From sequence record OP729297.1: DNA of 64,000 nt; one strand, given 5' to 3'. The notes beneath the pieces are model-generated. The model did no database searches. It saw nothing but the letters and a program-made list of their open reading frames with translations, and was not told the DNA's origin. A program made the position numbers and the translations under genes. Below are positions 24,884-40,412 of this stretch, one piece after another (position 1 is the first letter of the stretch; each line of letters starts with the position of its first letter).

Positions 24884-24892
24884 GAGTTTGAA

Positions 24893-25630
24893 TTAGGTAC
24901 GGCGCAGCAGATAGCCCTTAATAAGAGAGCGCATAGTGTGCTCGTGCGCAGTCTTTTCAATACCCCATGCGCCTGCAAGACTAAGCAGTTCTTCCTTAGT
25001 CAGGAGGTCAACTTCTTTGAGGGCGGCATGGTTAGGAAGGCTTTCGAAGCGTTTAACCATTTCGCCAACAACATCGACGAGTCTGACAGGAACATCAGGG
25101 TTAAGACCGTAGTGTTCACACAGAGCTTCCTGCAATTGCTCCGCATCCATGTCAGCAGCTTTGCCTTTTGTACCAAGACCTTCATCTGCAAACATCTGCA
25201 CCAGAGTGGCTTTGTCCGCACAAAGAATTGAGGTGCGCAGATTATCCAGCTCCTGTATGTCGAGATCTTCGTCATCCATTTCAGGCACAGGCTGGGATTC
25301 GTCACGCGTCAGGCTGCGGTACTCGGCATACACATCTTTATCCTGAGTGAACGGATAATCGTCTTGCATACCATTAGCAACCCACTGCTCGGCAGTTTGC
25401 AGATACTGGCCATACGTTATCAGCTCCTGACCAGTCAGACCTTCGATCAGCTTTGCTTCCATCAAAGATGCTTTGCTTACCAGTACGCACTGGAGTGCCT
25501 GGAGTTGTGTGCTGAAACTTACGACACACAAGTAACGGTCACTAACAGGCAGGACGCGGTACATTTGCTCACGGATTTTTTCCATGAGATTAAAATAGCG
25601 GTTGATTTGTTCAGACAGTTTCTGAGTCAT
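24893..25630 (-). CDS. Hypothetical protein with repeated helical module(s)
   Basis: Contains DKATLVQMFADEGLGTKGKAADMDAEQLQEALCEHYG; start MTQKL. Confidence 0.7.
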   Translation of the reverse strand: MTQKLSEQINRYFNLMEKIREQMYRVLPVSDRYLCVVSFSTQLQALQCVLVSKASLMEAKLIEGLTGQELITYGQYLQTAEQWVANGMQDDYPFTQDKDVYAEYRSLTRDESQPVPEMDDEDLDIQELDNLRTSILCADKATLVQMFADEGLGTKGKAADMDAEQLQEALCEHYGLNPDVPVRLVDVVGEMVKRFESLPNHAALKEVDLLTKEELLSLAGAWGIEKTAHEHTMRSLIKGYLLRRT

Positions 25631-26096
25631 GATCGCAATCCCCATTGCAGACGTGTTTAGTTTCGATATGCAGCACTTGAGGCTGAGTGAGAAGTTTGAA
25701 GCCACCAGCGTGGTCAATCAGGTTGCGACACTCACGCTCCAATGCTTCTCGTTGAGCATGTTCCATAACAACAATACGGAACGCTTCGACACATGCAGGG
25801 AGGTCGTTACGGAGCTTGACGTCATTCAGCAGGCCGTTATCGGATGCAGGTATTTGACCCATGCAAATTTCAGCCCAATACTTCTCTGCCTTATCGAGAG
25901 CTTGTTTCAGCAGAGGTTCATTGACGGCATTTGAGATCACGTTAGCAGCACACAGCGTTTTGAGAGAACGAGCAAGACGAGCACCAGCTTCAAGGCGTAG
26001 CGTCATCAGATCGTAATAGGAAGGTTTTTCTGGAGCTTGTTTTGACGGTCGAGTATCGTCAGGCAGGTCGTCGTTAAGCAGATGTTCGGCAGACAT
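25611..26096 (-). CDS. Hypothetical protein
   Basis: 161-aa ORF after GAGGT. Confidence 0.7.
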   Translation of the reverse strand: MSAEHLLNDDLPDDTRPSKQAPEKPSYYDLMTLRLEAGARLARSLKTLCAANVISNAVNEPLLKQALDKAEKYWAEICMGQIPASDNGLLNDVKLRNDLPACVEAFRIVVMEHAQREALERECRNLIDHAGGFKLLTQPQVLHIETKHVCNGDCDHDSETV

Positions 26097-26123
26097 GGCA
26101 TTACCTCAAAAATTCGTGCAGAT

Positions 26124-26160
26124 AAGACAAAAGGGCAAACGCTCGTCAGCGCTGCCCTTT
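26124..26160 (-). terminator. Rho-independent terminator
   Basis: Minus strand AAAGGGCAGCGCT-GACG-AGCGTTTGCCCTTT then TGTCTT, just after the H1-like gene. Confidence 0.75.
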
Positions 26161-26193
26161 CGATCAAGTGACCGCTAGTGCGCGATTACTTGC

Positions 26194-26712
26194 TTATTCC
26201 ATTTCGAAGTCGAAGTCTTCTTCTTGTTTTTTCTGCTTGCCGCCTTTGGCTTTTTTATCGCCTTTCACTTTCTTGGCAGCTTTGTCTGCTTTAGCAGGCT
26301 TAGCGGATTTTTCGGCTTTAGCTTTTTTATCAGCTTTGGCTGGCTTTTCAGCTTTCGCTTTTTTGTCTGCTTTAGCAGGCTTAGCGGCTTTCTCAGCTTT
26401 AGCAGGTTTTTCTGCTTTAGCTTTCTTGCCAGCTTTTTCAGCTTTAGCAGGCTTCTCAGCTTTTGCTTTCTTAGCAGCTTTTTCTGCTTTAGCAGGCTTA
26501 GCGGCTTTCTCAGCTTTCGCTGGTTTAGCAGCTTTAGCTGGAGCAGCACCGTCAGCAGACAGAGCTTCAACCTGAGCGGTCAGACCGGCGCGGCGCTGTG
26601 CGATCGCTTCGGCTTCTTTAGTCAGGCTGGCAGCAGTTTTAACCAGATTTTTTTCAGATTTGTCCAGGGCACGGATTTCTTTGTTCAGGCCGCTGATTGC
26701 TTTCTTAGACAT
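26194..26712 (-). CDS. Histone H1-like / AlgP-like basic repeat protein
   Basis: N-terminal coiled coil, then about eight KPAKA(E/D)K repeats, acidic tail EEDFDFEME. Confidence 0.8.
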   Translation of the reverse strand: MSKKAISGLNKEIRALDKSEKNLVKTAASLTKEAEAIAQRRAGLTAQVEALSADGAAPAKAAKPAKAEKAAKPAKAEKAAKKAKAEKPAKAEKAGKKAKAEKPAKAEKAAKPAKADKKAKAEKPAKADKKAKAEKSAKPAKADKAAKKVKGDKKAKGGKQKKQEEDFDFEME

Positions 26713-26792
26713 ACGATTTCCTTACTTTGTTTTTGATGCGGCGTTTTCACCGCTGGATGAAAAGATAAATTTGTTCAGGTTTGTTTCCCTGT

Positions 26793-26827
26793 AGACGTAC
26801 ATTATTATATTCAACATACGTCTGCAA
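26793..26827 (-). promoter_or_regulatory. Sigma70-like promoter overlapped by an inverted repeat
   Basis: TTGCAG-17 nt-TAATGT; arms AGACGTA (26793-26799) and TACGTCT (26817-26823). Confidence 0.5.
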
Positions 26828-26928
26828 GGAATTTTGAAACTTTTTACAAAAATATTCGAAAAGTTTTCTCGAATATTTGCCCCTCGCTCATTCACAGAGA
26901 ACTAGAGGGGCGCGCCGGTCAGAAGATA

Positions 26929-27732
26929 TTACTCGTCGTCTTCGTCTTCGTCTTCATCGTCGAAGTCTTCGTCGTCTTCGTCTTCATCTTCGTCTTCGTC
27001 GTCTTCACCGCCGAAGTGACTTTCGCAGAGTTCGCGCAGTTCATCTTCGTCCATCTTCTTCGCCTTTTTGGCGGTGGCCAGCTTGTGTTCGATTACCAGG
27101 GCGCGAAGTTCATCTTCGTCGAGAGAGTCGAGGTCGAGTTCGTCATCTTCGTCCTCGTCTTCATCTTCGTCGTCTTCTTCGTCTTCGTCGTCCTCTTCAT
27201 CTTCATCTTCGTCGTCGCCGTCTTCGTCGTCTTCGTCGTCCTCTTCATCAGAGTCTTCGTCGTCTTCGTCTTCGTCGTCGCCGTCTTCATCTTCGTCGTC
27301 CGAGTCGTCTTCGTCCTCGTCTTCGTCGTCCTCTTCTTCGTCTTCGTCCTCTTCGGACTCGCCGCCCAGGTTATCGTTCAGCAGTTCGCGCAGTTCATCT
27401 TCGTCCAGCGCTTTCGCTTTCTTAGCGGTAGACAGCTTGGCTTTGACAACTGCTTCGCGCAGAGTGTCTTCATCGACGCCGGAGATATCCAGTTCGTCTT
27501 CTTCTTTCACAGCAGCGACGATTTCAGCGACGGTTGGTGCCTTAGGCTTTTTGCCTTTAGCAGCTTTACCGCCTTTGTCAGCTTTAACAACTTTGCCACC
27601 AGACACGGTCAGGCCGGCAGAGGTGAGCAGCGCGGCGATTTCTTTGTCGGTCGCGTTTTCCACTACAACACCCAGCATTTTAGCCAGAACCAGAGATGCG
27701 GTGTTAACGGTTGCTTTAGCAGCTTTAGCCAT
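26929..27732 (-). CDS. Basic N-terminus / polyacidic protein with two copies of the ~45-aa module
   Basis: K/A-rich first ~70 aa; module copies at ~27361-27495 and ~27007-27141; long D/E tracts. Confidence 0.8.
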   Translation of the reverse strand: MAKAAKATVNTASLVLAKMLGVVVENATDKEIAALLTSAGLTVSGGKVVKADKGGKAAKGKKPKAPTVAEIVAAVKEEDELDISGVDEDTLREAVVKAKLSTAKKAKALDEDELRELLNDNLGGESEEDEDEEEDDEDEDEDDSDDEDEDGDDEDEDDEDSDEEDDEDDEDGDDEDEDEEDDEDEEDDEDEDEDEDDELDLDSLDEDELRALVIEHKLATAKKAKKMDEDELRELCESHFGGEDDEDEDEDEDDEDFDDEDEDEDDE

Positions 27733-27779
27733 GATATTTATTTCCTGTTTGATTAGAAGCGATGTTGCTTCAATTAAGA

Positions 27780-27847
27780 TTTACAGATTTCGAGAGACAG
27801 GCAGCGAGAACATTTTATCTCGCTGCATACTTAATGTTTACAGATTT
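27780..27847 (-). promoter_or_regulatory. Tandem AAATCTGTAAA motifs (candidate second promoter class) flanking a hairpin
   Basis: Copies at 27780-27790 and 27837-27847 around GCAGCGAGA-TAAAATGT-TCTCGCTGC. Confidence 0.5.
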
Positions 27848-27881
27848 CAGAAAGTCAGTTAAAAGTCTTCGTCAGACTTTA

Positions 27882-28427
27882 TTACTTTTTTACTTTCTTC
27901 ACCAGCTTCGCAGGCTTGTCTGCTTTGTCGCCTTTCTTAGCTTTGGTTGGAGCAGCGGTGCCGTACTTCTTAGCGGCCGCGTTTTCGTTTACAGTAGGAC
28001 GAACGTTGAAGCCAGGCAGAGCGGTGTTGATGTGAATCACTTCGCCGGTTTCGACAGAGGTTGCGTGAATCATGGCGCCGACGTATTTAACGGTGAAGCC
28101 TTTGTACTCACGAACCGGCGCGTTAACCAGAGCAGTAACACTACCGTGCTGACCGGCATCGCCCAGGATAGACAGGATTTGGTTCGGACCGAAGGTTGAG
28201 ATGATCTGCGCAGAAGAACCGTGGCCTTTTTTATGGCGGATGGTCACGCTGTTATCGGTGCGGTCAGTAATGAAACCAATCAGCTCAACAGCCTGAACTG
28301 TTTCGATCAGAATGTCGTGCGGCAGTTCAGCAGGCTTCACTTTAGAGGTGCTAATGGAACCAGATTTTTTAGCGATGCGAGAAGCCAGGGTAGGTGCCAG
28401 TGAAGTGCCTTTAGTTACTTTAGCCAT
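27882..28427 (-). CDS. Hypothetical basic protein
   Basis: 181 aa from MAKVTKG; Lys-rich tail. Confidence 0.75.
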   Translation of the reverse strand: MAKVTKGTSLAPTLASRIAKKSGSISTSKVKPAELPHDILIETVQAVELIGFITDRTDNSVTIRHKKGHGSSAQIISTFGPNQILSILGDAGQHGSVTALVNAPVREYKGFTVKYVGAMIHATSVETGEVIHINTALPGFNVRPTVNENAAAKKYGTAAPTKAKKGDKADKPAKLVKKVKK

Positions 28428-28526
28428 TTGTTTAATGCTCCGGGATTTATAAAGTGTGAGCGTATCGCTCGGTTCGAACTTCAATTAGTGTTTACAGTTT
28501 CGATTGCAGGTAACTTTTACAGATTA

Positions 28527-29357
28527 TTAAAAGCTATCACGAATCAGATGCGTACAAATTTTCAGAAGTGTTTCGCAGAACAATTCTTCGTAATCATCGT
28601 CATCTTCGAGATGGTCAATAGCATCGCTCTCAAATGCGATAGGCAACCAGTCGAAGGCCTGACAAATGTTACGTGCGGCGAAGCCCATGTGGGCAGAGTT
28701 ATTCTTCGCCTCCCACACCCAATGTAACATCTTACGTGACTGTTCATACTGGGTGTCTTTGAGGAACAGGTCGATGTTCGCTCGGATGTAATTATTGAGT
28801 TCCCCCAGCAGCGCAGCGCTTGCAGGAGCGTCGGCACCAACAGCAGAACAATACATTGCGACAGAGCGATACAGAGAAGGCTGTTTGATTACCACGTCGG
28901 TGCGGTTCAAATCAGCAAGCGCTCTGGCCACTTTGTTCGTTTCACGGTTTACAGAACCGTGTGCGAGTTGCTGTACGACATTGTGATAGTGGCTAATGCC
29001 AGCACACATTATCATATGCAGAGCAAACGGCAGCGGATTCGCTTGCTTCTGTTTACTCTTTACAGATTCGTTTTCAGCTTGCAGCTTTTTAAGCTCGGCT
29101 GTTTGTTCGTTGCAGAAGCCAACCACTTCTTTAATGCGTTCATCGCGCAGTGCGATTTCAACGGCGTGTTGGCGTACTTTACGTCTGAGTGCGACACGCA
29201 GCACTGTGCTGCGGCTTACTTCATCCTCTAAGACGTTCTCCACATCTTTCTTATCACCAATAGCTTCTTCAAGCTCGTTGGTCAGTTCGCGGATTTTATC
29301 GTCACGGGTACTAATCATCTGTACGATGTTAGCTTCGTGGTCTACTTCTTGTGTCAT
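28527..29357 (-). CDS. Hypothetical coiled-coil protein
   Basis: 276 aa with heptad N-terminal half. Confidence 0.75.
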   Translation of the reverse strand: MTQEVDHEANIVQMISTRDDKIRELTNELEEAIGDKKDVENVLEDEVSRSTVLRVALRRKVRQHAVEIALRDERIKEVVGFCNEQTAELKKLQAENESVKSKQKQANPLPFALHMIMCAGISHYHNVVQQLAHGSVNRETNKVARALADLNRTDVVIKQPSLYRSVAMYCSAVGADAPASAALLGELNNYIRANIDLFLKDTQYEQSRKMLHWVWEAKNNSAHMGFAARNICQAFDWLPIAFESDAIDHLEDDDDYEELFCETLLKICTHLIRDSF

Positions 29358-29372
29358 GTTTACAGATCCCCA

Positions 29373-29402
29373 AGAAAAGTAAGCGGCCCTTTCGAGCCGC
29401 TC
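29373..29402 (-). terminator. Rho-independent terminator
   Basis: AGCGGCTC-GAAA-GGGCCGCT followed by TACTTTTCTT. Confidence 0.8.
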
Positions 29403-29414
29403 AATCAGACGATA

Positions 29415-32400
29415 TTACTCGTCGTCGCCTTCGTCTTCTGCGGACTCGTCTTCTTCGTCCTCAGGAGAGCACAGCACCAGCACGGTCAGGTCACCGCCGT
29501 TGTCGAACGTTGCAGCAGCCAGACCACCAGACAGCACAGCCAGCGGCAGGTCACGAGAGTCCAGCGCACTTGCTACTTCGATCACGTCTTCGGCATCGTC
29601 GAAGTTCGCAGCGTCAGCAGCAGAGTAGGACTGTACGTTTTCCATGGCGCGCAGTGCGGTCAGCGCTTCGAACAGGCGGTCGTTGTTCAGCAGGGCAGCG
29701 GACTCCATAGTGAAGCCAGCGTACACTTTGATACCTTCGACTGTTTCAGCCAGAGAGATAACGCGGTTAACAGCAGCCTGCACCAGACGTGAAACTTCGG
29801 AGTCACCCCAGAAGCCTGGGACAGCTACGTTCATCACGGTGGTGTGCAGCGCAACGTGTGCGGTGTCAACCTGAACAGGACGAACGCGAGACTTAGCACT
29901 GTACAGGCTAGCCAGCGGCAAATGATCACCCTGCATTTCGTCCAGACCGTCTTCGTCGAGATAGCCCATCTCAGCAGCCTGAGCCATTTCTTCTTCGTCG
30001 ATGAAGTCACCAACAATCAGACCCGCTTCGGTAGGGTCCATACCGTCTTCAATGCGGCCGGCGTACAGGTTCGCATCGAGGTCCTGCTTGATGGTCTGCT
30101 CCAGGCTTTCCGCCCACGTTTCAATATCAAACGTTTTAGGGTTAGCGAGGAAGCGAGTAGTACCGACGCGCTCCAGAATATCCAGAATAGACTGAGCTGG
30201 CAGGTGCATAGAGCCAGGCGCTTTACCAGGTTTACCCAGATTGAACGGGTAGCGGTAGTTGAAGCCGCCAACGTCAGACAGTTCGCTTTCAATCGGACCG
30301 TAGGTGTTACCGTCAGTCAGAGTGAAGTTGATGATCAGCGTCTGGTCCATATCGACAGACAGCATCGGGCCGACGGAGTTGGTGGTGTCAACGTCTTTAA
30401 CGAATTTCAGATGATCGTTAGTTTCAGACTCAGCAGCCTGCTCGGCGCTGTCTTCTTCGTCTTCTTCTTCGTCATCCACGAAGTCGCCTTCTTCATCTTC
30501 GGCTTCTTCGTCGCTTTCGCCTTCGTCTTCCTGATCGGCAGATTCGTCATCGGCCAGGAACTCAGGCAGCACAGCCAGCAGCGCGTCAACAAACGACAGA
30601 CCGTCTTCGTCAGCAATCTCTGACAGGTCAACACCGTAGTTGGTTGCGATTTCTTCAACAGCCGCGAAGTCATCTTCGCTACCGCCGTTAATGATCGCTT
30701 CGATCATTTCGTCAGCAGTTTCGCATTCATCGACCAGAATGCCCAGGCTTTCTGCTACGTGCTGAATTGTAGCGTCGTCGTACTGGCGCAGCAGCTCAAC
30801 AACTTGCTCGGCGTTAGAGGTTTCAACTTCTTCGGCTTCAACTTCTTCGTTGGCCTGACCCTGGATGCGGGTGAACGCTTTCATTACCTGAACGATGGTC
30901 ATCGTTGAGGCGTCTTCGCCCATAGCAGTAACAGCGGCAGCGCGTTGTTCGGCAGTCAGCATACCGCCAGCAAACTGGAAGTAGTCGAGAGGATCGGTAA
31001 CAGCGTCGATCTGGTGCTGCACTTCGTCTTCGTCTTCGTCTTCTTCTTCGCTGTCTTCGGACTCGTCTTCTTCCGATTCTTCTTCATCGGATTCTTCTTC
31101 GTCTTCTTCGTCTTCTTCGTCAGAAGACAGAGCGGCCAGCATGTTAGGGCAGGCGATTTCGTGCTCTTGCAGAGCGCCGACGAAGGTGTTCAGCAGTTCA
31201 ATCATTTCCTGCTCGGTTGCACCTTCAACAACTTCCAGCAGTTTCGCAGTCAGAGTTTCAACGGTGTCTTTCTTCATCACCGGAATATCCTGAGTGCGGA
31301 TCAGAACTTTCAGACCGGCGCGATCAAGCTCTTCGGCGACCAGCACAGAAGCGAGGAACTGAACAGCATCGAAGTCTTCTTCTTCGCCATCTTCTTCCTC
31401 TTCTTCTTCGTCTTCCGCAGAGTCATCGGCGGAGTCGTCACCGCTTTCGCTTTTTTCCAGCCAGATGGCCTGCTCAGTTTCGAACGATTCGCGGATGCCG
31501 TCTTCGTTCATCGCGTCCAGCGTATAGCCGATAGCTTCAAGCGCTTCGGACATTTGTTCGATGCTCAAGGTTTCAGCCTTGTAACCAAACAGGTCCGTGC
31601 CGGCCGCGACTTCTTCTTCGCTGCCTTCGTTCTGATCTACAACTTCGTCTTCGGCATCGAAGTCTTCGTTCAGATTAACCGGCGTTGCGTTAGTAGGTTG
31701 TTTCACGTTCAGTTCTCCGTTATTTGGAATTGCAGCAACGATCTCGCCGCCAATGGTTTGCATGATGAAAGTACGCACAGCGCCGGACAGCACAGTAACA
31801 GGATTGGCCGGCAACGCGCTGTAGTCGATTACTGCTTTATCGAAAGCGCCGTCAGTTTCATCAATGCTTGTGATATTTACAGTTTGCAGATTTTCCACCT
31901 GCGCGGCCAATGCGCGGATGTACGGACCAGCTTTGCTTTCTTCGACAATCGAGATGGAGTGAACGCCAAACTCGGCTGCGAGGTCCGCGAGATCTGTTTC
32001 GCCAGCACTGAACAGAGCAAGCGACAGACTGCCGTGCATCTCCGACACTGCTTTATTTACAGTATACGAAACGATGACTGCATCGCCTTCACCCACTTTG
32101 ATGCGCTCGTCGATACGAGTAGGCACACCGTTGTTTGGATGCAGGATGTAGTACGCGCTGTTTTGGTCAGTCGAAGGACCAGATGCGCGTTCGATCAGAT
32201 TTGGCAGACGGTCCATCACTTTGCCTTCGATCTGCTTTTCGTGCAGTTGCTCACTGGCGCTCATATAAGAGAAGCGGCCGTGTGCGTTAAGCGAAGTCAA
32301 AACAACGATGGTACATTTGTTGATGTGGCCCGACTCAGACGAGTTAGCGCGACGTTGTTCATCAGCGATCTGGCGTTGAGTCTCAGAACCGAATGTTGCA

Positions 32401-32426
32401 GCAGCGCCCAGGTTATTATTAGACAT
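29415..32426 (-). CDS. Large polyacidic protein (1003 aa)
   Basis: Several D/E tracts separating short helix-extension-helix-like segments. Confidence 0.8.
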   Translation of the reverse strand: MSNNNLGAAATFGSETQRQIADEQRRANSSESGHINKCTIVVLTSLNAHGRFSYMSASEQLHEKQIEGKVMDRLPNLIERASGPSTDQNSAYYILHPNNGVPTRIDERIKVGEGDAVIVSYTVNKAVSEMHGSLSLALFSAGETDLADLAAEFGVHSISIVEESKAGPYIRALAAQVENLQTVNITSIDETDGAFDKAVIDYSALPANPVTVLSGAVRTFIMQTIGGEIVAAIPNNGELNVKQPTNATPVNLNEDFDAEDEVVDQNEGSEEEVAAGTDLFGYKAETLSIEQMSEALEAIGYTLDAMNEDGIRESFETEQAIWLEKSESGDDSADDSAEDEEEEEEDGEEEDFDAVQFLASVLVAEELDRAGLKVLIRTQDIPVMKKDTVETLTAKLLEVVEGATEQEMIELLNTFVGALQEHEIACPNMLAALSSDEEDEEDEEESDEEESEEDESEDSEEEDEDEDEVQHQIDAVTDPLDYFQFAGGMLTAEQRAAAVTAMGEDASTMTIVQVMKAFTRIQGQANEEVEAEEVETSNAEQVVELLRQYDDATIQHVAESLGILVDECETADEMIEAIINGGSEDDFAAVEEIATNYGVDLSEIADEDGLSFVDALLAVLPEFLADDESADQEDEGESDEEAEDEEGDFVDDEEEDEEDSAEQAAESETNDHLKFVKDVDTTNSVGPMLSVDMDQTLIINFTLTDGNTYGPIESELSDVGGFNYRYPFNLGKPGKAPGSMHLPAQSILDILERVGTTRFLANPKTFDIETWAESLEQTIKQDLDANLYAGRIEDGMDPTEAGLIVGDFIDEEEMAQAAEMGYLDEDGLDEMQGDHLPLASLYSAKSRVRPVQVDTAHVALHTTVMNVAVPGFWGDSEVSRLVQAAVNRVISLAETVEGIKVYAGFTMESAALLNNDRLFEALTALRAMENVQSYSAADAANFDDAEDVIEVASALDSRDLPLAVLSGGLAAATFDNGGDLTVLVLCSPEDEEDESAEDEGDDE

Positions 32427-32453
32427 TTGTGTTATCTCCTCAGATAAGGTTGT

Positions 32454-33734
32454 CTACAGTGACCAGACGCGACTTGCGCCTTTGCGGTCATACGTAAGGA
32501 TAGACTTCTTCAAACTACTATTAACAGTGTTGACTGTAGTGAATCCCCACCGAGTGAGAATTTTATTCACATCGTCAAGACCAGACGATACCGACATGTA
32601 CGTACTGCGGTCCATGATAGTACCACAATCTACGGCGGCAAACAGAGCACGGGCTGCGGCGAACTTCTTCGCTGCATGGTGGTTCTCTTTCTTCTCGAAC
32701 TTGTCGAAAGCGTCCATGAACTCTTTACGCTTCTGGAAGAAGTCGTTAGCTTTCTGGAGCTTCTCAGCTTGCTCAGGCTTGAGCGTTCGAGTCGTGCTAC
32801 CGTACTTGGCAATCACTGCGTTCCACTTCGGAGCCTGCTCGTTCAACGCAACACGTTCGTCCAGCAGTGCCTGATATTCAGGGCTGCGGCGATCAGCATA
32901 CTTGTCGTTTGACAGCAACGTCAGGTACGGGTCGTCGTCGATATCCTGCAGTTCGCGGAAGTTAGAAACAGAATCACCTTCTGTCCAGTAAACCATGCCC
33001 ATGACCATCGCATACATGCTCTTGCCACGCAGCGCTTTCGACTTGAACTCTTTCGGTGCAGCTTTGAACTCAGGTCGTAACGCTATCTGTGCGAACGGCA
33101 TCGGATAACCAAGCGGGCTTATCGTGAATGCGTCACACAAAGTAAATGTGGCTTGCTCATGATTCGTGTTCTGGTAGATGAACACGACAGGAATACCATC
33201 AGGCACTTTCACCTTGTTCGCATAGCCGTCTTCTTTCAGATGAATGAAGGACTGCATGTTGAGCATGTTCGCCGTGTAAGCGGCAGGCATCAACCAGCGA
33301 CTTCCCGCGAAGCTATGACGATGCTTGCGGTGGTATTCGTTAATCAGTTTGCGGATATACTTGATACCCACACCCTTCTTATCGTTTTCCTGGCAGTAGT
33401 CTTTCAGGTACACCGCAATGTCATGTTGCTTCGGTACACCAAGCCCTAGCTCAAACAGCGCAGCCAGACTGGACGACGCGCTTTTGCTTTGGGTGTCACG
33501 TACTTCACGCACAAGCCGCTGTACGGTTGCGGAATGAATGCGAGGTACGAATGCAGTTGTGATTGTACCGCTACGACGCTGTTCGCCGCGGTTGGTTACT
33601 GTGTGCCGAACTTCAATTGCATGTTTCGACTTTTTCAAATAGTCGGGGCAGTCAAGCCGCACCAGATATTTAGATTCAGCCACAGACAAGAGCAACTGTC
33701 TCTGGTCGTGGTTGAATACGTGGTCATAAAACAT
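32454..33734 (-). CDS. Hypothetical protein
   Basis: 426-aa ORF. Confidence 0.75.
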   Translation of the reverse strand: MFYDHVFNHDQRQLLLSVAESKYLVRLDCPDYLKKSKHAIEVRHTVTNRGEQRRSGTITTAFVPRIHSATVQRLVREVRDTQSKSASSSLAALFELGLGVPKQHDIAVYLKDYCQENDKKGVGIKYIRKLINEYHRKHRHSFAGSRWLMPAAYTANMLNMQSFIHLKEDGYANKVKVPDGIPVVFIYQNTNHEQATFTLCDAFTISPLGYPMPFAQIALRPEFKAAPKEFKSKALRGKSMYAMVMGMVYWTEGDSVSNFRELQDIDDDPYLTLLSNDKYADRRSPEYQALLDERVALNEQAPKWNAVIAKYGSTTRTLKPEQAEKLQKANDFFQKRKEFMDAFDKFEKKENHHAAKKFAAARALFAAVDCGTIMDRSTYMSVSSGLDDVNKILTRWGFTTVNTVNSSLKKSILTYDRKGASRVWSL

Positions 33735-34185
33735 TGTATCCCTCTACTGTTTTCGCATCAGTCACAAACTGCGGATAACCATCGGCTACAACTACTTCAA
33801 ACAGAGATTCGATGGCAGACTGGCTCAATGCGTTTGTGCGCACATGCTCCCAAGGAATCGCTACAACCTCGTCACCAGCATAATCACTGGCCGACGTATG
33901 CGGCATAATTAGTAATCCCAGTGGAATCTTGTGCAATCTACAGAACGCATTAAGTTCTTTTACAGTTTTATGCAATGCGCTCTGGTTCGCTTGATTTGCC
34001 TTACCCGTGTCAGCAATAGACGTCAGGTAATTGTAGTTCGCAACGTTCAATAACATTTGCTGGCTGATAACAGTAGGGTTAACACCGATGGTACCCAGAA
34101 TAAACTCAGCTACCAGCTTCTGAGCTTCTTCTGGTGAAGACGGCCTGTAGCCGCCACGACTAATTACAACTTTCGACTTTTTCAT
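33724..34185 (-). CDS. Hypothetical protein
   Basis: 153-aa overlapping ORF. Confidence 0.7.
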   Translation of the reverse strand: MKKSKVVISRGGYRPSSPEEAQKLVAEFILGTIGVNPTVISQQMLLNVANYNYLTSIADTGKANQANQSALHKTVKELNAFCRLHKIPLGLLIMPHTSASDYAGDEVVAIPWEHVRTNALSQSAIESLFEVVVADGYPQFVTDAKTVEGYNVL

Positions 34186-34562
34186 GATGGCTCCCGAAGA
34201 TCTGGCTCATATGATTTCCACACATGTTCAACGAGTGCTTGCCATTCATCAAGTGTCAGGCGCTTCCCAGTGAGCTTGTAGTATTCAGAGAAGAACTTCT
34301 TCGCAGGAGCCTTCTCGTCGTTTGCCCGCGACACATAAAGAGCAGCTAACGGTGGGCGGCCGTTAGCGATATCAAGACGCATGGTCTTCACTACAAATTC
34401 CCACAGCGCGTGATACTGTGCCGTGCTCACGTTAAGCTGGAGACCAAACACCGCAGGTGACAGGTCAGAGTAGTACACGTAGGTTTTGAGTATCGCGGCC
34501 GTTGTCAGCCGCGAATAGATTTGAGCGAATACACCAGACAAAACGATTTCGTTGTTTGTCAT
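34182..34562 (-). CDS. Hypothetical protein
   Basis: 126-aa ORF with 4-nt overlaps. Confidence 0.7.
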   Translation of the reverse strand: MTNNEIVLSGVFAQIYSRLTTAAILKTYVYYSDLSPAVFGLQLNVSTAQYHALWEFVVKTMRLDIANGRPPLAALYVSRANDEKAPAKKFFSEYYKLTGKRLTLDEWQALVEHVWKSYEPDLREPS

Positions 34563-35791
34563 ACGCTGGCATCCAGTTCAGAGGTTTTGCCCAGGGTCAG
34601 GTTGAACGTGCTGTCAACATTAGCATGGGCCATCACACATTCAGCACCGTCTTTGTCGATGAAGACAGGACCCGTCATATCGCAAGTCAGGAACATCAAC
34701 TCAACGCCGTTCGGCTTGTAGACGATCAGGCCGCGCTTCACGTCAGAAGATTTGATACCCAGCTTTTTGGCGATGACTGCTTTCGATGCTTTCGAATGCT
34801 CTTTCAGCGCTGGCATATCTTTCTTGCCTGGCTTAATGAGCTTGATCGTCATCTTGCGAATACGCTTGGTGATTTCTTTTTCCGAAGCGTATGTAGGCAC
34901 GGCAAGTTTATGCTTTGCCTTCTTTGATTTCACTTTCGGGTTCTCGATGGACTTATCGAGAGACAGCTTGAGGTTGCCCATCAGAGTTTGAATGGCAACA
35001 TCGTAGAATTTCACGTCGAGGTCAAGCGCACTAAGTACGCGCTCAATCTGCGAACGATTCAACGTCAGGGCGCCGTCTTGAATCAGACGTTTCAACGCGA
35101 CAGGCATCTGCTTGATGAACGTGTCTTGCGTTACGCTGGCGTTCAGGCGATTCACTGCGGTCTGTGCAGCTTTGCGGCCCATGTGTTTGATAACACCAGC
35201 ACCGCCGTGTTTCTTCACATCTTTCCAGTCCATGTCAAACGCTTCGCTCAACATCTTGCGGCGGTCTTTCGTATTCGCGTCGGCGATGGTTGCGTCGATG
35301 ATGCCAGCCAGTTCAGCTTTACGATCAACTTTATCAGACGGCAGCATGTCGATTTCGTCTTTCGACGCGGCGACTTCTGCTTTACGCTCTTTCTTGGTGC
35401 GCTTGTCTTTGTTACGTTCGCGGGTAGCTTTCACGCCGCCTTTCACTTTCGCAGTTTTCACAGCAGGCTTGCCTGTCTCAGGGTCGATGTAGACCAGATT
35501 GCCGAAGTCAGGCTTGATAGTGTCAACGTCGATTTCGTCGTTGCGCAGATCTTTCTGCTGGCGCTTGTTCAGCTTAACGGTGATACCGTCAATCAGAACG
35601 TGCTCGGCTTTCGCATACGGCTGTTCGATCTCTTTCAGAGTTTTACCAGCAAGCACGATACGCTTCACCGGAATCTGCGGACCTTTCGCGTCGGTGCTAT
35701 AACCGTTAGCGTTTACTTTGTTGATGAAAGTGGTGGTGCCATCCAGACGACGTACACGGGCATTCAACAGGTTTGCATTTGCGTTTGACAT
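34559..35791 (-). CDS. Hypothetical Lys-rich protein
   Basis: ~410 aa from MSNANA after GAGGA. Confidence 0.75.
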   Translation of the reverse strand: MSNANANLLNARVRRLDGTTTFINKVNANGYSTDAKGPQIPVKRIVLAGKTLKEIEQPYAKAEHVLIDGITVKLNKRQQKDLRNDEIDVDTIKPDFGNLVYIDPETGKPAVKTAKVKGGVKATRERNKDKRTKKERKAEVAASKDEIDMLPSDKVDRKAELAGIIDATIADANTKDRRKMLSEAFDMDWKDVKKHGGAGVIKHMGRKAAQTAVNRLNASVTQDTFIKQMPVALKRLIQDGALTLNRSQIERVLSALDLDVKFYDVAIQTLMGNLKLSLDKSIENPKVKSKKAKHKLAVPTYASEKEITKRIRKMTIKLIKPGKKDMPALKEHSKASKAVIAKKLGIKSSDVKRGLIVYKPNGVELMFLTCDMTGPVFIDKDGAECVMAHANVDSTFNLTLGKTSELDASV

Positions 35792-35879
35792 AGTGTGATT
35801 CCTCAATCAGCTTAGTTGTCAGAGATGCGGCTCTGTCTGAACCGCATCTTACTTCAAGTTTTCGTATTACAGGTCGATC

Positions 35880-37508
35880 TTATTTCAGCAGCTTGCGCAG
35901 TTGTGCGGCTTTCATGTTCTCAGCTTTACGCACAGTGGTCAGGCCGGCTTCAACAACGCGGTCACGCAGTTCGTCTTCGGACAGGTCTTCCAGATCTTCG
36001 GACGGCAGGTCGTTAAACTCGAAGTCGTCTTCTTCTTCGCCGTCTTCTTCTTCGCCATCTTCTTCATCTTCGAAGTCGTTTTCTTCACCGTCTTCTTCTT
36101 CACCGTCTTCTTCTGAATCGTCAGCTTCACCGCTATCGATCACAGGGCTAAAGTCGGTCAGAGTTTTGATATCGGCTTTGCTATACACCAGCACGTTATC
36201 ATCTTCGTCTGCATCATCAGACAGGTCGATAACCAGCAGACCGCCTTTGCTATCGCAGCCGAGGTAAGCGAAAGTAGTTTCGCCGTCAGTTAACATCAGG
36301 CCTGGGGCCAGAGCTTCTTCATCAACACCGAAGCGTTCAGCCAGCGCAGCGTGATACTTGGCGGTTACTTTCTTGTTGACCAGTTCGAGTTGATCAGCAT
36401 CGACTGCGACGAACTCGTATTCGGCATCTTGCGGTTCGCCGTCTTCTTCTTCGCCATCGTCTTCTTCACCGTCTTCTTCGTCTTCGGAGGATTCTTCCTC
36501 TTCTTCTTCCTCCTCGATTTCATCTTCATCTTCAATTTCATCTTCTTCCTCTTCTTCGCTTTCATCAGCGACGATTTCGAAGTCGGCCAGTTTGTCGGCA
36601 CCGAATGATTTGAAGCCGTCAGTGTCGGCGCTATACATCAGCGCTTTGCCTGCATGTTTCGCAGACTCACCGACGAACACGAACTCAGTACCTTCGCTGG
36701 TCAACACGGTACCAGGCAGCAGGTCGTTCGCGTCTTCAAGGTCGAAGGCCGCTTTGATTGCTTTCGCCAGCACTTTGCCAATCTTCTTGGCAGCGAGCTT
36801 GGCCGCACGTTTCGCAACAGCTTCGTCCAGCTCAGGCGCAGCAGCAACAGTTTTAACAGGCGCAGCGTATTGCAGGTTCAGCGTAATCTGGAGCACGTTA
36901 CCTTCAGGCGCATACTCAGCACCGTAAGTAACGTCCAGTGCGTTAGCGATCGGCGTTTTGTTATCAGCGCACACTTTTGCAACGTCAGAGTTAAGCACGT
37001 AATGGGCCAGACGTTGAGCAACTGCATCGGTCAGCGACTCGTCTACAGCTTCGATCTCAACAGCAGGCTTGGCTTTGCCGCCTTTGATGATAGCGTGAGC
37101 CAAATTCTGGTAATCTTCGGATTGCTCTTCGGAAGATTTACGACGAACTTTCGGCTCTTTGTCTTTCGACGGCTTCGCGTCTTTCTTGCCAGAAGTTTTC
37201 TTTGTACCAGCTTTCTTGCCAGACGCTTTCGGCGCGGCAGCTTCTTTCTTGGCAGTTTTCTTACCAGACGCTTTCGCATCTTTCAGCTTAACATAACCTT
37301 CGCCTGTATCTTCCAGCTGGCTCATGTTCATGCGCTCGATTTCGCGGAAGTGAGAGCCTTCTTTGATGATGCAGCGGGTGGCGATACGCTTGGTCAGGCC
37401 CTTCACTTTATAGCCAGACGCGATTGCATCTTCGATTTTAGATTTGGTGCCGTTCAGCAGGACGATAGTTTTGCCAACCAGGTTAGTGTTAGTTTCGATA
37501 CGTGCCAT
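35880..37508 (-). CDS. Basic/polyacidic protein with C-terminal module copy
   Basis: K/A-rich segment, D/E tracts, ends LEDLSEDELRDRVVEAGLTTVRKAENMKAAQLRKLLK. Confidence 0.8.
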   Translation of the reverse strand: MARIETNTNLVGKTIVLLNGTKSKIEDAIASGYKVKGLTKRIATRCIIKEGSHFREIERMNMSQLEDTGEGYVKLKDAKASGKKTAKKEAAAPKASGKKAGTKKTSGKKDAKPSKDKEPKVRRKSSEEQSEDYQNLAHAIIKGGKAKPAVEIEAVDESLTDAVAQRLAHYVLNSDVAKVCADNKTPIANALDVTYGAEYAPEGNVLQITLNLQYAAPVKTVAAAPELDEAVAKRAAKLAAKKIGKVLAKAIKAAFDLEDANDLLPGTVLTSEGTEFVFVGESAKHAGKALMYSADTDGFKSFGADKLADFEIVADESEEEEEDEIEDEDEIEEEEEEEESSEDEEDGEEDDGEEEDGEPQDAEYEFVAVDADQLELVNKKVTAKYHAALAERFGVDEEALAPGLMLTDGETTFAYLGCDSKGGLLVIDLSDDADEDDNVLVYSKADIKTLTDFSPVIDSGEADDSEEDGEEEDGEENDFEDEEDGEEEDGEEEDDFEFNDLPSEDLEDLSEDELRDRVVEAGLTTVRKAENMKAAQLRKLLK

Positions 37509-37564
37509 GATTAATACTCCTCAGTATATGTTTTTGTGTGTGACGCACTATTGCGTCTGAATCT

Positions 37565-37618
37565 ATTATAGCATAGGTGGCCGTCAGATAACAACCACGA
37601 TTTTGTCCAGTTTTCTGC
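37565..37618 (-). promoter_or_regulatory. Conserved phage promoter P3
   Basis: GCA GAAAA CTGGAC, 34 nt, TATAAT preceded by TGC; followed by hairpin GACGCA-ATAG-TGCGTC. Confidence 0.8.
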
Positions 37619-37670
37619 ATACTTCGCAGATAGCAGGGCAGCTATATTTCACTGCCCCGCTCGTTATTGC

Positions 37671-38480
37671 TTATGCGCGGTAGTAGCTATACAGCTTCAC
37701 TACGTCATTGTCAGACAGCTTGACGGCAGCTTCTGGCTTGATGATTTGCGCAGCTACCAGATACTTGCGCATCTTAGCAACAGCAGCGGCGTTATCATCT
37801 TCTTCTTCGTCAGATTCTTCTTCGTCGCCATACTCGACGTTCTCAGGAATCTCCTCTTCATCTTCTTCGAGGTGCGCACCGTCAAGCAGAACTTCTGTTC
37901 TGGTTGTCACGGCAGCAGACGTTTCGCCAATACGATCAGAACTGATATCAGCACGAATCACTTGCGTACTGTTTTCAGGCAGTCGAACGAAAATCCAATC
38001 AGGAGAATCGTGTTCGACATACACCCACTGACCGAACTCTTTGCAGAGGTCCATATCGGTCAGAATATCGTTAACCAGCGACGGGATTTTAGTGAAGCGC
38101 GTATTCTTGAGGTCACGCAAGGCGCCTTCAATCTTACGACGAGACACTTTGATGATACCCGTAGCAGCCGCTTCCGCGTCAGTCGTAACCTTCCATGCTG
38201 ATAAGATTGCGTGAACCAGATTGAACACGCGTTCCTCGTCACGAATTTTCGTCTGCGTGTCCGGGAGACGTTCGCCCGTAGCTTTCGATTTGTAACCGTA
38301 GCCAGGAGGCAGTTGACGTGGTTTAGCGGAAGACGGCCCGCGTGGTGTTGGGCGTTTCTTCTCACCTTCGTTCTCAGGACGCTCGCTAGGCTTTTTGCCT
38401 TTAACGCGCTTTGGCGAGTTCTTAGCGGCGCGAGCGCGGGAGAATTTGTCTTCTGTCTTAGGGCGTGAAGTATTAGGCAT
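37671..38480 (-). CDS. Hypothetical protein with basic N-terminus and acidic C-terminus
   Basis: 269 aa after AGGA. Confidence 0.75.
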   Translation of the reverse strand: MPNTSRPKTEDKFSRARAAKNSPKRVKGKKPSERPENEGEKKRPTPRGPSSAKPRQLPPGYGYKSKATGERLPDTQTKIRDEERVFNLVHAILSAWKVTTDAEAAATGIIKVSRRKIEGALRDLKNTRFTKIPSLVNDILTDMDLCKEFGQWVYVEHDSPDWIFVRLPENSTQVIRADISSDRIGETSAAVTTRTEVLLDGAHLEEDEEEIPENVEYGDEEESDEEEDDNAAAVAKMRKYLVAAQIIKPEAAVKLSDNDVVKLYSYYRA

Positions 38481-38676
38481 ATCTATTTCCTTTGCGGTTT
38501 AGCATGAGAGCACGGCAGGCGGAAACCGCGTAAAGCCCGACGCGCTCAAAGGGTATCGAACCCTTTTTAAAACAGCCTCACAGGAAGCAGCTTTAAAAAG
38601 GACCGTGTGCCCGGGAAAAGATAAACACACGGTCAAGACGTTATAGGAACATCACAGAGAGAACATGTCTCGCTGT
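38481..38676 (-). ncRNA. Candidate structured 5' leader / small RNA
   Basis: ORF-free ~195 nt after P4 with stems GACCGTGTG/CACACGGTC and CTTTTTAAA/TTTAAAAAG, and T-loop-like AAAGGG-TTCGATA-CCCTTT. Confidence 0.35.
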
Positions 38677-38682
38677 CTCTAT

Positions 38683-38735
38683 ATTGTATCACGGACGCTG
38701 TTTTGAGACAATCCTCATTTTGTCCAGATTTATGC
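38683..38735 (-). promoter_or_regulatory. Conserved phage promoter P4
   Basis: GCA TAAAT CTGGAC, 33 nt, TACAAT preceded by TGA. Confidence 0.8.
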
Positions 38736-38951
38736 TTAGAAGCGACGATCTGCCAGAAGCATTCGAACCAGCGCTTCGCGGCTGTAGTTGCTTGCGTCGT
38801 CATCTTCGTCCACAAGCTCGTTAGCTTCTACAGCGTCGGCCAGCTCGTCGTCTGTCCAGTCGTCGTATTGAGCGATTTGCTCATTATAGCGTTGTTCTTC
38901 GGCGGCAGCTATCTGGCCGTTCACTTCATCTTGTGTAGGACATCGGCTCAT
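38736..38951 (-). CDS. Small acidic protein, module-like
   Basis: 71 aa from MSRCPTQ; YDDWTDDELADAVEANEL...SREALVRMLL. Confidence 0.65.
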   Translation of the reverse strand: MSRCPTQDEVNGQIAAAEEQRYNEQIAQYDDWTDDELADAVEANELVDEDDDASNYSREALVRMLLADRRF

Positions 38952-38955
38952 TTGA

Positions 38956-39369
38956 TTACTCCACACGATTGCATTCGCAATGCTCTTTATGGCAGGAGAA
39001 GCAGACTTCATCTTCACCTTCGTCGAGGTTCTGCCAACCGTTTTCATCGGTACGGCCATCATCGTTGAGATTGCCTGGTCGTTCTTCCGCAGTGTCGAGG
39101 TCTTCATCATCGAAGTCATCGTCTGCATCAGCAACACGTACAGCTTTATGCTCACCGAGAATCGCTTCGACCTCAACTTCTACCTCAGGCGCCATATCTG
39201 TCATCAGCACACAGAACTCGTCGAACGTCAGACCTATCTGGCTTAATGCCGTTTCGATCAGCTTTTTGCCTTCGTCTTCTTCGTCGCGTCCGAAGACTTC
39301 AATTACACCAGCGAGTGCACCACCCATGAGAATGACCTGTGCATCTTTACTTGCTTCGTTGAACTTCAT
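38956..39369 (-). CDS. Acidic hypothetical protein with Cys-rich tail
   Basis: MKFNEA after GGAGG; ends CFSCHKEHCEC. Confidence 0.7.
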   Translation of the reverse strand: MKFNEASKDAQVILMGGALAGVIEVFGRDEEDEGKKLIETALSQIGLTFDEFCVLMTDMAPEVEVEVEAILGEHKAVRVADADDDFDDEDLDTAEERPGNLNDDGRTDENGWQNLDEGEDEVCFSCHKEHCECNRVE

Positions 39370-39510
39370 TAACAGCCTCCTGTTTGGTTTTAGGTACTTT
39401 ATGCAGCGCACTAATCAGTACGCTTCAAAAAGGACCCGCGTCGTCACGCCTCTGCGATGGGGCGCCTCATTGGGGGTGAGCATTTCTGGACGGGCGAGCC
39501 AAACTGATTG

Positions 39511-39702
39511 TTAGTGCATGTTCGTCAACTTGATTGTGATAACGCGGCCTCGCTTGGTTGTTTCCACTTCCCGCTTCTTGTATGTGAGACACAGACAATC
39601 AAGCGTGAACGTTAAGTCGGGCACTGCGTCTTTCTGGCGTTCTTCAATAACAAGCTCGCCGCGTTGTCGCAACTCTTTGATCATTTCGTTAGTGGTTTTC
39701 AT
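39511..39702 (-). CDS. Hypothetical protein
   Basis: 63-aa ORF coupled to upstream stop. Confidence 0.6.
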   Translation of the reverse strand: MKTTNEMIKELRQRGELVIEERQKDAVPDLTFTLDCLCLTYKKREVETTKRGRVITIKLTNMH

Positions 39703-40412
39703 TAGAAGTATTTGTCCTTCGCATCAGGTGCGAGTGGCAGTTCAATGTCAGGGTCAACGCCAACTTCAAGGCTATGTACTTCCTGAACCTGATCATCGTT
39801 CAGAGTGATTGCCCAGTCTTCGGCGCGATATCCCCAACTGCAAATCATCATACGCTCGATTTCGGGGTTAGCATCTTCCATGTCGAAGTCTTCTTCATCG
39901 TCGATACATTCATCGTCGTTAAAGTCGTCCTCGTCGTCGATGGCGTCATCATCCTCCTCATACCCGTTATGAGCATCCTCATACAGGGGATGTTTTGGTG
40001 CGAGGGCCACAGCCAGCTTGTCTGCGATTTCAGGGTCAATGTGAATCTCACTGATCATCGGACCGTGTTCATCATACATCGTGCGAATATCGACAGGTAT
40101 GGCAAGACTGGCCGCAATACCCTGCGAGCGAAGCATCAGGCACATGTTGTATCGGTTCATGATAGTATCAGTTGATACCAGCTCACGGGTGAGCGAGACA
40201 ACTAAGTGCTCTACGGTACGGGAGCCGTCACGCCATACAACATCGACTTCTTTCAGACCGTGCTCTTTAACAACTGCCTGGAGAGCTTCCAGAAACTTTC
40301 TAGGTCTGAAAGAGGCGAGCACTTCGTTTTCACGAACGAGTGCAAATACTTCAGGAGCCAGCTTACTGCGTTTCAACATAAACGGTGAGAGTTTCATGTT
40401 ATTTAGCCTCAA
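39702..40412 (-). CDS. Hypothetical protein
   Basis: 236 aa with acidic C-terminal third. Confidence 0.7.
   Translation of the reverse strand: MRLNNMKLSPFMLKRSKLAPEVFALVRENEVLASFRPRKFLEALQAVVKEHGLKEVDVVWRDGSRTVEHLVVSLTRELVSTDTIMNRYNMCLMLRSQGIAASLAIPVDIRTMYDEHGPMISEIHIDPEIADKLAVALAPKHPLYEDAHNGYEEDDDAIDDEDDFNDDECIDDEEDFDMEDANPEIERMMICSWGYRAEDWAITLNDDQVQEVHSLEVGVDPDIELPLAPDAKDKYF

Follow-up and report, generated by a model that had tools for sequence, protein, structure and literature searches.

We analyzed a stretch of 64,000 nucleotides (nt), referred to here as the window, from the genome of Erwinia phage vB_Ea_2910A, a jumbo phage of the fire-blight bacterium (OP729297.1; 262,854 bp; genus Alexandravirus), base 1 of the window being genome base 124,001, and found in it a cluster of genes coding for strongly acidic and strongly basic proteins that forms a conserved block in related phages (Table 1). 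Open reading frames (ORFs) are named here by a letter followed by the protein length (A172, B267 ... N154), and genome-wide counts refer to the 327 ORFs of 2910A. The minus strand holds every gene between 24.9 and 43.3 kb of the window, all of them deposited as "hypothetical protein" in 2910A and also in Erwinia phage Y3, and the two genes for topoisomerase II subunits lie directly downstream of the charged-protein block. A preliminary description of this DNA had pointed to polyacidic and polybasic ORFs at this site, and all of those that it named are indeed present on the minus strand with the compositions claimed. Two starts were placed further downstream, at the ATG at 28427 instead of the TTG at 28484 for C181 and at the ATG at 35791 instead of the TTG at 35806 for I411, because both the cross-genus alignments and the deposited record put them there.

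The charged ORFs are concentrated well beyond what a random distribution would give. Defining an acid tract as a window of 30 amino acids (aa) with at least 60% aspartate plus glutamate (D/E), we found such tracts in 9 ORFs of the whole genome, five of them in the cluster (26.2 to 40.4 kb); considering that these five fall within 13.5 kb, or 5% of the genome, the binomial P is ~4e-5 by our own arithmetic. The long runs of GAA and GAC codons that had been noted beforehand are real as well, with GAA:GAG at 51:8 and GAC:GAT at 53:14 in B267, against ~1.4:1 and 1.1:1 elsewhere. At the DNA level, the acid tracts are imperfect tandem repeats of 3 to 48 nt, constant in position and different in length even among close strains.

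Table 1. Features of the charged-protein cluster and its surroundings, in window coordinates
Feature	Position	Strand	Description	Net charge across lineages	Counterparts in PaBG and Lu11
Z245	24893-25630	minus	Between the block and topoisomerase II; divergent helical-module copy		
A172	26194-26712	minus	30% K/R, net +27, K/A/P/E repeats	+26 to +30	Homologs PaBG_124 (net +31), Lu11_0162 (net +25)
B267	26929-27732	minus	47% D/E, net -99, short Lys-rich stretch	-83 to -100	Positional counterparts PaBG_125 (net -93), Lu11_0161 (net -99); 150-159 aa, 67% D/E
B267 control region	27733-27881	minus	CTGTAAA box, lineage-variable hairpin, second box CTGTAAA-N3-TAATTGAAG, leader		
Class 2 promoter boxes, examples	27836-27843; 28490-28497				
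Candidate -1 frameshift of C181	27859-27891	minus	Heptamer A_AAA_AAG 27891-27885; zero-frame stop 27884-27882; -1 frame 27885-27859		
C181	27882-28427	minus	Net +14; basic N-tail, all-beta core, Lys-rich disordered tail	+11 to +17	Homologs PaBG_126, Lu11_0160
C181 control region	28428-28526	minus	Two CTGTAAA boxes, the second extended by TAATTGAAG as in B267		
D276	28527-29357	minus	Helical; average codon bias; poorly conserved		
Intrinsic terminator of E1003	29380-29403	minus	10-bp stem, 6 GC pairs, T-run		
E1003	29415-32426	minus	24% D/E, net -190	-160 to -201	
Shine-Dalgarno hairpin of E1003	32427-32450				
F426	32454-33734	minus	Conserved, uncharged, folded; average codon bias		
G153	33724-34185	minus	Conserved, uncharged, folded; average codon bias		
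H126	34182-34562	minus	Conserved, uncharged, folded; average codon bias		
I411	34559-35791	minus	Basic, net +27	+22 to +32	
J542	35880-37508	minus	Net -74; basic linker, two acid tracts	-56 to -78	
Shine-Dalgarno hairpin of J542	37509-37535				
J542 promoter	37565-37613	minus	Sigma-70-type, CTGGACAAAA box, extended -10		
K269	37671-38480	minus	Basic N-terminus and acid tract, possible C-terminal module		
K269, L137, M231, N154	37671-40863	minus	Upstream members, less conserved; M231 acid tract with EEDFD		
Class 1 promoters, upstream members	38683-38730; 40917-40964	minus	Same type as that of J542		
Q511	41748-43283	minus	Beyond the range of the preliminary description; one helical-module copy (aa 349-398)		

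vB_Ea_2910A belongs to the "hairy myovirus" group together with the Dickeya phages AD1 and JA11 and the Erwinia phages Y3 and Yoloswag, with the Pseudomonas phages Lu11 and PaBG as more distant members. An assignment to the nucleus-forming phages of the RAY/Agricanvirus type (Chimalliviridae) was considered and ruled out, both the record and the literature placing the phage in Alexandravirus within the Lu11/PaBG/Y3 group; since it is not a chimallin nucleus former, the term "phage chromatin" can be applied to it only as an analogy. A block of 10 genes, running from J542 to A172 and followed by topoisomerase II, is syntenic in phages Alexandra, Y3, Yoloswag, pEa_SNUABM_5, JA11, and the Yersinia phage fHe-Yen9-02, as well as in two metagenomic contigs of IMG/VR. 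Across the lineages, the block proteins are only 27 to 60% identical to those of 2910A, while their net charges keep within narrow bands (Table 1). K269, L137, and M231, upstream of the block, are poorly conserved among lineages.

Comparison of the C181 model with predicted viral structures returned three significant relatives (E ~1e-11), one of them an uncharacterized PaBG protein and the other two unnamed entries. This fold match led us therefore to trace in PaBG and Lu11 a core trio formed by the counterparts of C181, B267, and A172, whose order C-B-A is kept in both phages. The charges of PaBG_125, Lu11_0161, and B267 indicate that a net charge of ~-95 is held from Pseudomonas to Erwinia phages, despite differences in length (150 to 279 aa) and architecture. 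Upstream of the PaBG trio, J542 has a match (E, 6e-6) in another acidic protein, PaBG_131, of net charge -60. Taken at the level of sequence comparison, the charge of these proteins is under selection, and the data support the view that the charged ORFs form one coherent system under selection, whose proteins are largely disordered and complement each other in charge, and not a chance collection.

A172 starts with a coiled-coil-like helix of ~55 aa, continues with the K/A/P/E repeats, and ends in an acid-aromatic tip, EEDFDFEME, which is conserved in 12 lineages, in the form DF[DE]F or else GFEF. Its gene carries tandem DNA repeats of 18, 27, and 45 nt, and the Lys/Ala/Pro-rich repeats and high positive charge are present in all lineages, PaBG and Lu11 included. 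The protein had been described as an H1-like KPAK-repeat protein, which is correct as far as composition goes; as for homology to the H1 globular domain or AlgP, nothing in Pfam rose above threshold (the matches were coiled-coil and low-complexity ones), and the PHROG families found have no function assigned. The Lys-rich positional ortholog of A172 in pEa_SNUABM_5 (pEaSNUABM5_00339) is labeled "putative valyl-tRNA synthase," which looks like an artifact of low complexity.

B267 consists of an N-terminal helical part, a Lys-rich linker, and two consecutive units of a helical module plus poly-D/E, with an invariant DEDF in the C-terminal tail. E1003 has conserved N- and C-terminal domains (residues 1 to 258 and 665 to 985) around four helical units split by poly-D/E tracts, the first and third of these units being alike with 95% probability in profile-profile comparison. 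J542 was modeled by AlphaFold2 (AF2) as beads on a string, in which the N-domain is followed by a basic linker predicted to be disordered, an alpha/beta domain, a barrel (R1), an acid tract, helices and a barrel (R2), a second acid tract ending in DDFEF, and, at the C terminus, a compact module of three helices (511 to 520, 526 to 530, and 534 to 541) with a predicted local distance difference test (pLDDT) score of ~90. The acid tracts are predicted to be disordered, with a pLDDT of 29 to 40. R1 resembles SH3/Tudor-like barrels at Z scores of 4 to 5.5 (CarD, Mfd-RID, UvrD-CTD, KOW, eukaryotic Tudor), scores that would be compatible with nucleic-acid or protein binding.

Several of these parts are shared, as found by profile-profile comparison of ortholog alignments. 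A helical module of ~40 aa occurs twice in B267, at the C terminus of J542, and in Q511 at 96 to 99% probability (97 to 99% for Q511), with weaker copies in Z245 (86 to 92%) and possibly at the C terminus of K269 (82%). J542 and I411 have a common N-domain (96.5%; E, 9e-10), and R1, R2, and the C-terminal beta-domain of I411 are weakly alike at 74 to 75% (74% between R2 and the I411 C terminus). From the common N-domain and, more weakly, the beta-domain, I411 and J542 are probably adjacent paralogs of opposite charge. Hidden Markov models of the module, the N-domain, and the barrel parts found no further match in the rest of the 2910A proteome. An N-terminal signal common to the charged proteins was not seen. 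The motif [DE]3F[DE] is present in 7 ORFs of the genome, five of which are in the cluster, and the acid-Phe ends are kept across lineages as DF[DE]F in A172, DEDF in B267, and DDF[DE]F in the second tract of J542 (DF only in JA11-type lineages). An identification of the helical module as SAP, HeH, or Rho_N was not supported, since the only Pfam matches were below threshold (Ish1, E 0.026; SAP, E 0.023 and in the wrong register); PF07498, PF02037, and PF12949 had no match in the 2910A genome, and the module profile had none among PDB sequences. Against the same PDB sequences, the profiles of F426 and E1003 gave nothing or acid-tract noise. F426, like C181 below, belongs to a family restricted to this lineage and devoid of Pfam domains, with 29 members in 5.8 billion proteins; the ESM Atlas gave no usable match for either protein.

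The core of C181 (residues 35 to 155) was predicted by AF2, from an alignment of 18 sequences, to be all-beta with a pLDDT of ~90, located between disordered basic tails. A Foldseek search of C181 against PDB gave nothing significant, and the family counts 46 members in the same 5.8 billion proteins. At the end of its gene there is a candidate -1 frameshift site (Table 1). The zero frame ends GTA AAA AAG TAA, while the -1 frame reads VIKSDEDF and then stops. Heptamer, stop, and an acidic-aromatic tip in the -1 frame are found together in 15 of 21 C181 sequences, and the remaining 6 have no heptamer and carry SDEDF or SDENF in frame. The -1 peptide of the Yersinia phage, VTPPDEQF, differs but has the same character; Lu11 has the heptamer in phase followed by a stop, with a -1 tip ending in EGDLD, and in PaBG the acidic tip is in frame. 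Thus, the 21 sequences plus Lu11 and PaBG, that is, every C181 sequence checked, have an acidic-aromatic tip (SDEDF, SDENF, DEQF, or EGDLD), either in frame or in the -1 frame. Changes within the -1 tip are synonymous in that frame (GAC/GAT, TTT/TTC), and the pattern of substitutions indicates that the -1 product is under selection.

In-phase A_AAA_AAG heptamers number three in all the ORFs of 2910A, and only that of C181 abuts a stop codon. A hairpin of 7 bp lies 4 nt downstream (-7.6 kcal/mol; z, -2.3), and no Shine-Dalgarno-like stimulator was seen upstream of the heptamer. The gene dnaX uses a programmed -1 frameshift at A_AAA_AAG to make two protein forms from one gene. C181 has the same heptamer in phase and a hairpin a few bases downstream, but here the shift skips a stop and adds 7 to 11 residues, with no truncation, and the hairpin is weak and of unclear conservation. 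Judging from the sequences, it is likely that a programmed -1 frameshift gives forms of C181 with and without the tip. Acidic C-terminal tips are known from the single-stranded DNA-binding protein (SSB) of Escherichia coli and T7 gp2.5, and the layout of C181 (a barrel followed by a disordered linker, with an aromatic residue at the end of its short acidic tip, SDEDF) recalls SSB-type proteins. However, the linker of C181 is Lys-rich, its OB fold is putative, its tip would be optional owing to the frameshift, and a gp32-like SSB is encoded separately by the phage. By analogy, the tip of C181 could be a docking point for partner proteins or could bend back against C181's own basic surface.

The cluster had also been credited with its own promoters and terminators. 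A generic scan for sigma-70 promoters and terminators did not rise above chance, but phage-specific motifs conserved across genera were found upstream of A172, B267, C181, J542, K269, and N154, and terminators of the hairpin-plus-T type follow E1003 and A172. Two classes of promoter could be distinguished. Class 1 is sigma-70-type and is conserved across genera; its -10 is extended, and an upstream box that includes CTGGACAAAA is likewise conserved. Its ~10 sites, with the upstream box GCAnATAnCTGGACnAAAT, are all on the minus strand between 144.7 and 196.8 kb of the genome (20680 to 72764 in window numbering) and precede, among others, a gyrB-like gene, J542, K269, and N154. Class 2, CTGTAAATA, is T4-late-like ((a/t)tCTGTAAATA) and is located 18 to 66 nt 5' of ~15 to 25 genes on both strands, including some in the region that matches the capsid/tail module of Y3 by position; its core is the motif that the depositors of Lu11 annotated as "putative middle/late promoter." A variant of this class, CTGTAAAC, is found upstream of the SSB gene, B267, C181, and D276. 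The 19-nt element CTGTAAA-N3-TAATTGAAG is present upstream of B267 and C181, nowhere else in the genome, and is kept across genera, which suggests that the acidic B267 and the basic C181 are co-regulated. The two-box layout 5' of the acidic gene exists in all genera and in Lu11, where the middle/late promoter was annotated twice.

Codon indices calculated without D, E, and K place B267, J542, E1003, and C181 among the top 14 of the 327 ORFs, a rank that they share with the probable capsid protein and a neighboring structural protein (both recognized by length and synteny with Y3) and with SSB, the indices of D276, F426, G153, and H126 being average. This capsid-grade codon bias points to the charged members in particular being expressed at a very high level. 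On the minus strand, the loops of short hairpins hold the Shine-Dalgarno sequences of both J542 and E1003 (AATACT-GAGG-AGTATT and TTATCT-GAGG-AGATAA), and a compensatory stem change in JA11 (ATTTCT-TAGG-AGAAAT) suggests a conserved translation-initiation structure. Contigs of four RNA runs contained low-complexity cross-matches on acid tracts and short low-depth pieces that have no bearing on expression. In a plant-associated library described as "transcriptomic," fragments with 0 to 1 differences from the phage correspond to window positions 26194 to 31313; they indicate presence only, RNA and DNA being indistinguishable in them.

In phage T4, acidic internal peptides and the basic internal proteins IPI-III are packed along with the DNA and are processed by the prohead protease. 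The charged proteins of the cluster could be packaged in the same manner, loaded into the prohead to organize the 263 kb of DNA or to be ejected into the host. Like those of T4, they would be abundant basic and acidic phage proteins tied to phage DNA; their codon bias is as strong as that of the probable capsid protein, B267 and C181 have late-type CTGTAAA promoters like genes of the structural region, the annotation of Y3 includes a prohead core protease of the T4 type, and the packaging of many proteins is common in jumbo phages (Prichard et al., PMC10299810). Yet we consider this unlikely, although it is a rival to be taken seriously. The cluster is ~110 to 130 kb away from the head and tail module, beside topoisomerase II, and the homologs of its proteins in PaBG are missing from the virion bands. 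The PaBG virion proteome comprises 14 Coomassie bands identified by matrix-assisted laser desorption/ionization (MALDI) (gp76, 80, 81, 83, 94, 191, 202, 213-215, 240, 257, 261, and 263; PMC7412058), and gp124-126 and gp131 are not among them (PMC7412058), which is weak evidence against packaging because this data set is shallow and comes from a distant relative. The homologs are not marked as structural in the Y3 and Lu11 records either. In addition, the promoters of J542 and K269 are sigma-70-type, like that of the topoisomerase gene, a separate 672-aa acidic protein, encoded beside the probable capsid gene, would make a better candidate for a scaffold, and a charge of ~-430 per set would be unfavorable in a capsid filled with DNA. 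The cluster sits in a DNA-metabolism neighborhood apart from the virion module, and its PaBG homologs are absent from the virion proteome, both of which lend support to the preliminary description.

The sigma-70-type promoters of J542, K269, and N154 could be read by the host RNA polymerase, which is one of the reasons to consider a function in host takeover or anti-defense. The poly-D/E proteins would then mimic nucleic acid and in this way sequester DNA-binding proteins of the host (nucleoid proteins, restriction or sensor proteins, RNA polymerase), with the basic proteins coating host or phage DNA. The acid tracts are large and disordered in the AF2 models, K269, L137, and M231 are poorly conserved, as an arms race predicts, and R1 of J542 is weakly similar to the Tudor-like domains with which CarD, Mfd, and UvrD bind RNA polymerase. 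Ocr and ArdA are likewise very acidic phage or plasmid proteins. However, such known mimics are rigid folded surfaces that imitate B-DNA and not low-complexity tracts, whereas the tracts of the cluster are predicted to be disordered, have conserved basic partners, and match no family. Moreover, unlike what is seen in fast-evolving counter-defense genes, conservation of the core proteins and of their exact charge extends from phages of Pseudomonas to those of Erwinia, the most acidic of them, B267, has a middle/late-type promoter and not an early one, and the co-conserved basic partners would be left unexplained. We consider a decoy function unlikely, although it too is a rival to be taken seriously.

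The neighborhood of the trio points to DNA metabolism. In PaBG, its neighbors are an exonuclease, a sigma factor, SSB, RecA, and DnaB, and in Lu11 they are replication genes as well. It could be argued from this context (SSB, RecA, exonuclease, and helicase across the two phages) that the cluster is a replisome or recombination hub, in which C181 would be an auxiliary binding protein of single- or double-stranded DNA whose tip, along with the DF motifs of A172, B267, E1003, and J542, docks on phage replication proteins as SSB tips do, without bulk condensation. The conservation of the tip, in frame or by frameshift, the concentration of DF motifs in the block, and the SSB ORF of 2910A, which shares its promoter variant with B267 and C181 and ranks high in codon bias, are all in agreement. 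Nonetheless, a hub leaves unexplained the conserved charges of ~-95 and -190 and the capsid-grade expression of a 1,003-aa acidic protein, and the assignment of an OB fold to C181 is weak; we regard it as unlikely.

Considering the conserved net charge, the syntenic block, the shared parts, the co-regulation of B267 and C181, the signs of abundance, the DNA-metabolism context, the absence of the homologs from the PaBG virion bands, and the SSB-like layout of C181, we favor, with a probability of about 40%, the reading that the cluster codes for a DNA-linked intracellular polycation/polyanion matrix in jumbo phages of the Lu11/PaBG/Y3 type. The presence of CTGTAAA, a middle/late motif in Lu11, 5' of the SSB gene supports the timing. 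The set is probably stoichiometric and made in large amounts, with the trio C181, B267, and A172 as its core. C181 would be a small beta-barrel with Lys-rich tails, present in two forms, with or without the acidic SDEDF tip, by means of the -1 frameshift; B267, a protein polyanion of ~-95 net charge with short helical modules; and A172, a coiled-coil protein whose repeats are AlgP/H1-like and whose tip is DFDF. Further members join the trio in the Erwinia, Dickeya, and Yersinia lineages, namely, the pair J542 (acidic)/I411 (basic) and the giant acidic E1003. The basic members would coat or condense nucleic acid, most likely phage DNA under replication or at the packaging stage, while the polyacidic members would bind the Lys-rich tails by fuzzy electrostatics and in this way buffer the basic members, act as their chaperones, or displace them. 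Multivalent links to a common partner may come from the helical module and the acid-Phe motifs, and the whole would be a DNA-associated polyelectrolyte matrix, a phase similar to a coacervate or to chromatin. The anatomy of the proteins, the conservation of charge, the shared parts, the promoter classes, the codon bias, and the genomic context are observed; nucleic-acid binding, the acid-base partnership, and any condensate are what we infer from these data. The histone-plus-chaperone set proposed in the preliminary description is thus partly supported, as a conserved charge-complementary system with shared parts and a control element common to B267 and C181 but not as a family relationship, since no cluster member matches histones, the H1 globular domain, HU, or SAP/HeH by sequence.

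Several results weigh against such a matrix. The scans of 20 proteins with Pfam and PHROGs were uninformative and gave no match to a DNA-binding or chaperone family. The fold matches of the C181 core (Sm/Hfq, SH3, KOW, and the OB folds of SSB and PriB) are weak, with Z scores of 3.6 to 4.8 that are too low to signify more than a similar overall layout, and those of J542 are below the informative level, with nothing significant in PDB by Foldseek and Z scores of at most 5.5 in a wider fold search. The predicted complex of C181 with residues 197 to 267 of B267 scored 0.00, a value that is neutral on binding. At a 1:1 ratio, the acidic proteins add up to ~-430 and the basic ones to ~+85, so that simple neutralization fails unless the proteins are made in unequal copy numbers or the main counter-ion is something other than DNA. 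No RNA time course of infection was among the runs found. Finally, the PaBG virion list is shallow, and poly-D/E and Lys-rich proteins stain and digest poorly, so that proteins of this kind might be missed.

The closest parallels to the proposed matrix come from cellular systems. Histone H1 with prothymosin-alpha or nucleoplasmin also combines a disordered polycation rich in Lys, Ala, and Pro with a poly-D/E protein, charge being conserved rather than sequence. Here, however, the proteins are phage encoded, without an H1 globular domain or a nucleoplasmin core and with no relation in sequence or fold, and the binding is deduced. Two reports describe the H1-like AlgP of Pseudomonas on polyphosphate granules and condensates of Hfq with polyphosphate (PMC9239181; PMC11839049). 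The cluster has in common with these a Lys-rich repeat protein (A172) and an Sm-like barrel (C181, by its weak Hfq matches) with a polyanion near DNA, but here proteins (B267 and E1003) would take the part of the polyanion, and the resemblance to AlgP and Hfq is one of composition and a weak fold match. We may go one step further and suppose, although we hold it to be doubtful, that the protein polyanion is a genetically encoded counterpart of polyphosphate or nucleic acid, forming with A172 and C181, by complex coacervation, a compartment without shell or membrane that would organize phage DNA for replication, late transcription, or packaging, with the amount of C181 tip, as set by the frameshift, tuning its material state, as a condensate alternative to the chimallin nucleus.

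The phage literature searched describes neither these proteins nor a system of this kind, and histone-like proteins, condensates, and acidic proteins all go unmentioned in a 2026 review on the biology of jumbo phages. Most attention has gone to the nucleus-forming jumbo phages, and the setting of this cluster is the organization of genomes of ~260 kb in other jumbo lineages. If the matrix exists, a DNA-associated polyelectrolyte phase would be a new mode of compartment for a bacterial virus and would offer, outside eukaryotes, a natural model for pairs of polycation and polyanion proteins, in a compact candidate set of three to six probably abundant proteins in which the conserved property is charge. 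Even if the proteins turn out to be packaged or to act as decoys, the "charge ruler" of ~-95, the acid-Phe motifs, and the frameshift-controlled tip would be new facts about phages used in the biocontrol of fire blight and soft rot.

Acidic proteins are also found elsewhere in the genome. A 205-aa protein with 26% D/E (net -37) is encoded at window positions 59521 to 60138 on the minus strand, far outside the cluster. A second acidic group, located on the plus strand at genome positions 24156 to 37770 around the probable capsid gene (36195 to 37295), includes proteins of 630, 672, and 140 aa with at most 30% D/E. The one of 672 aa, in the head region, contains the motifs DEDFD and EDEFD and may be a scaffold or prohead core protein. 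In Lu11, the 370-aa protein Lu11_0155 (23% D/E) is annotated as "putative polyphosphate kinase," a label that looks like another product of low complexity.

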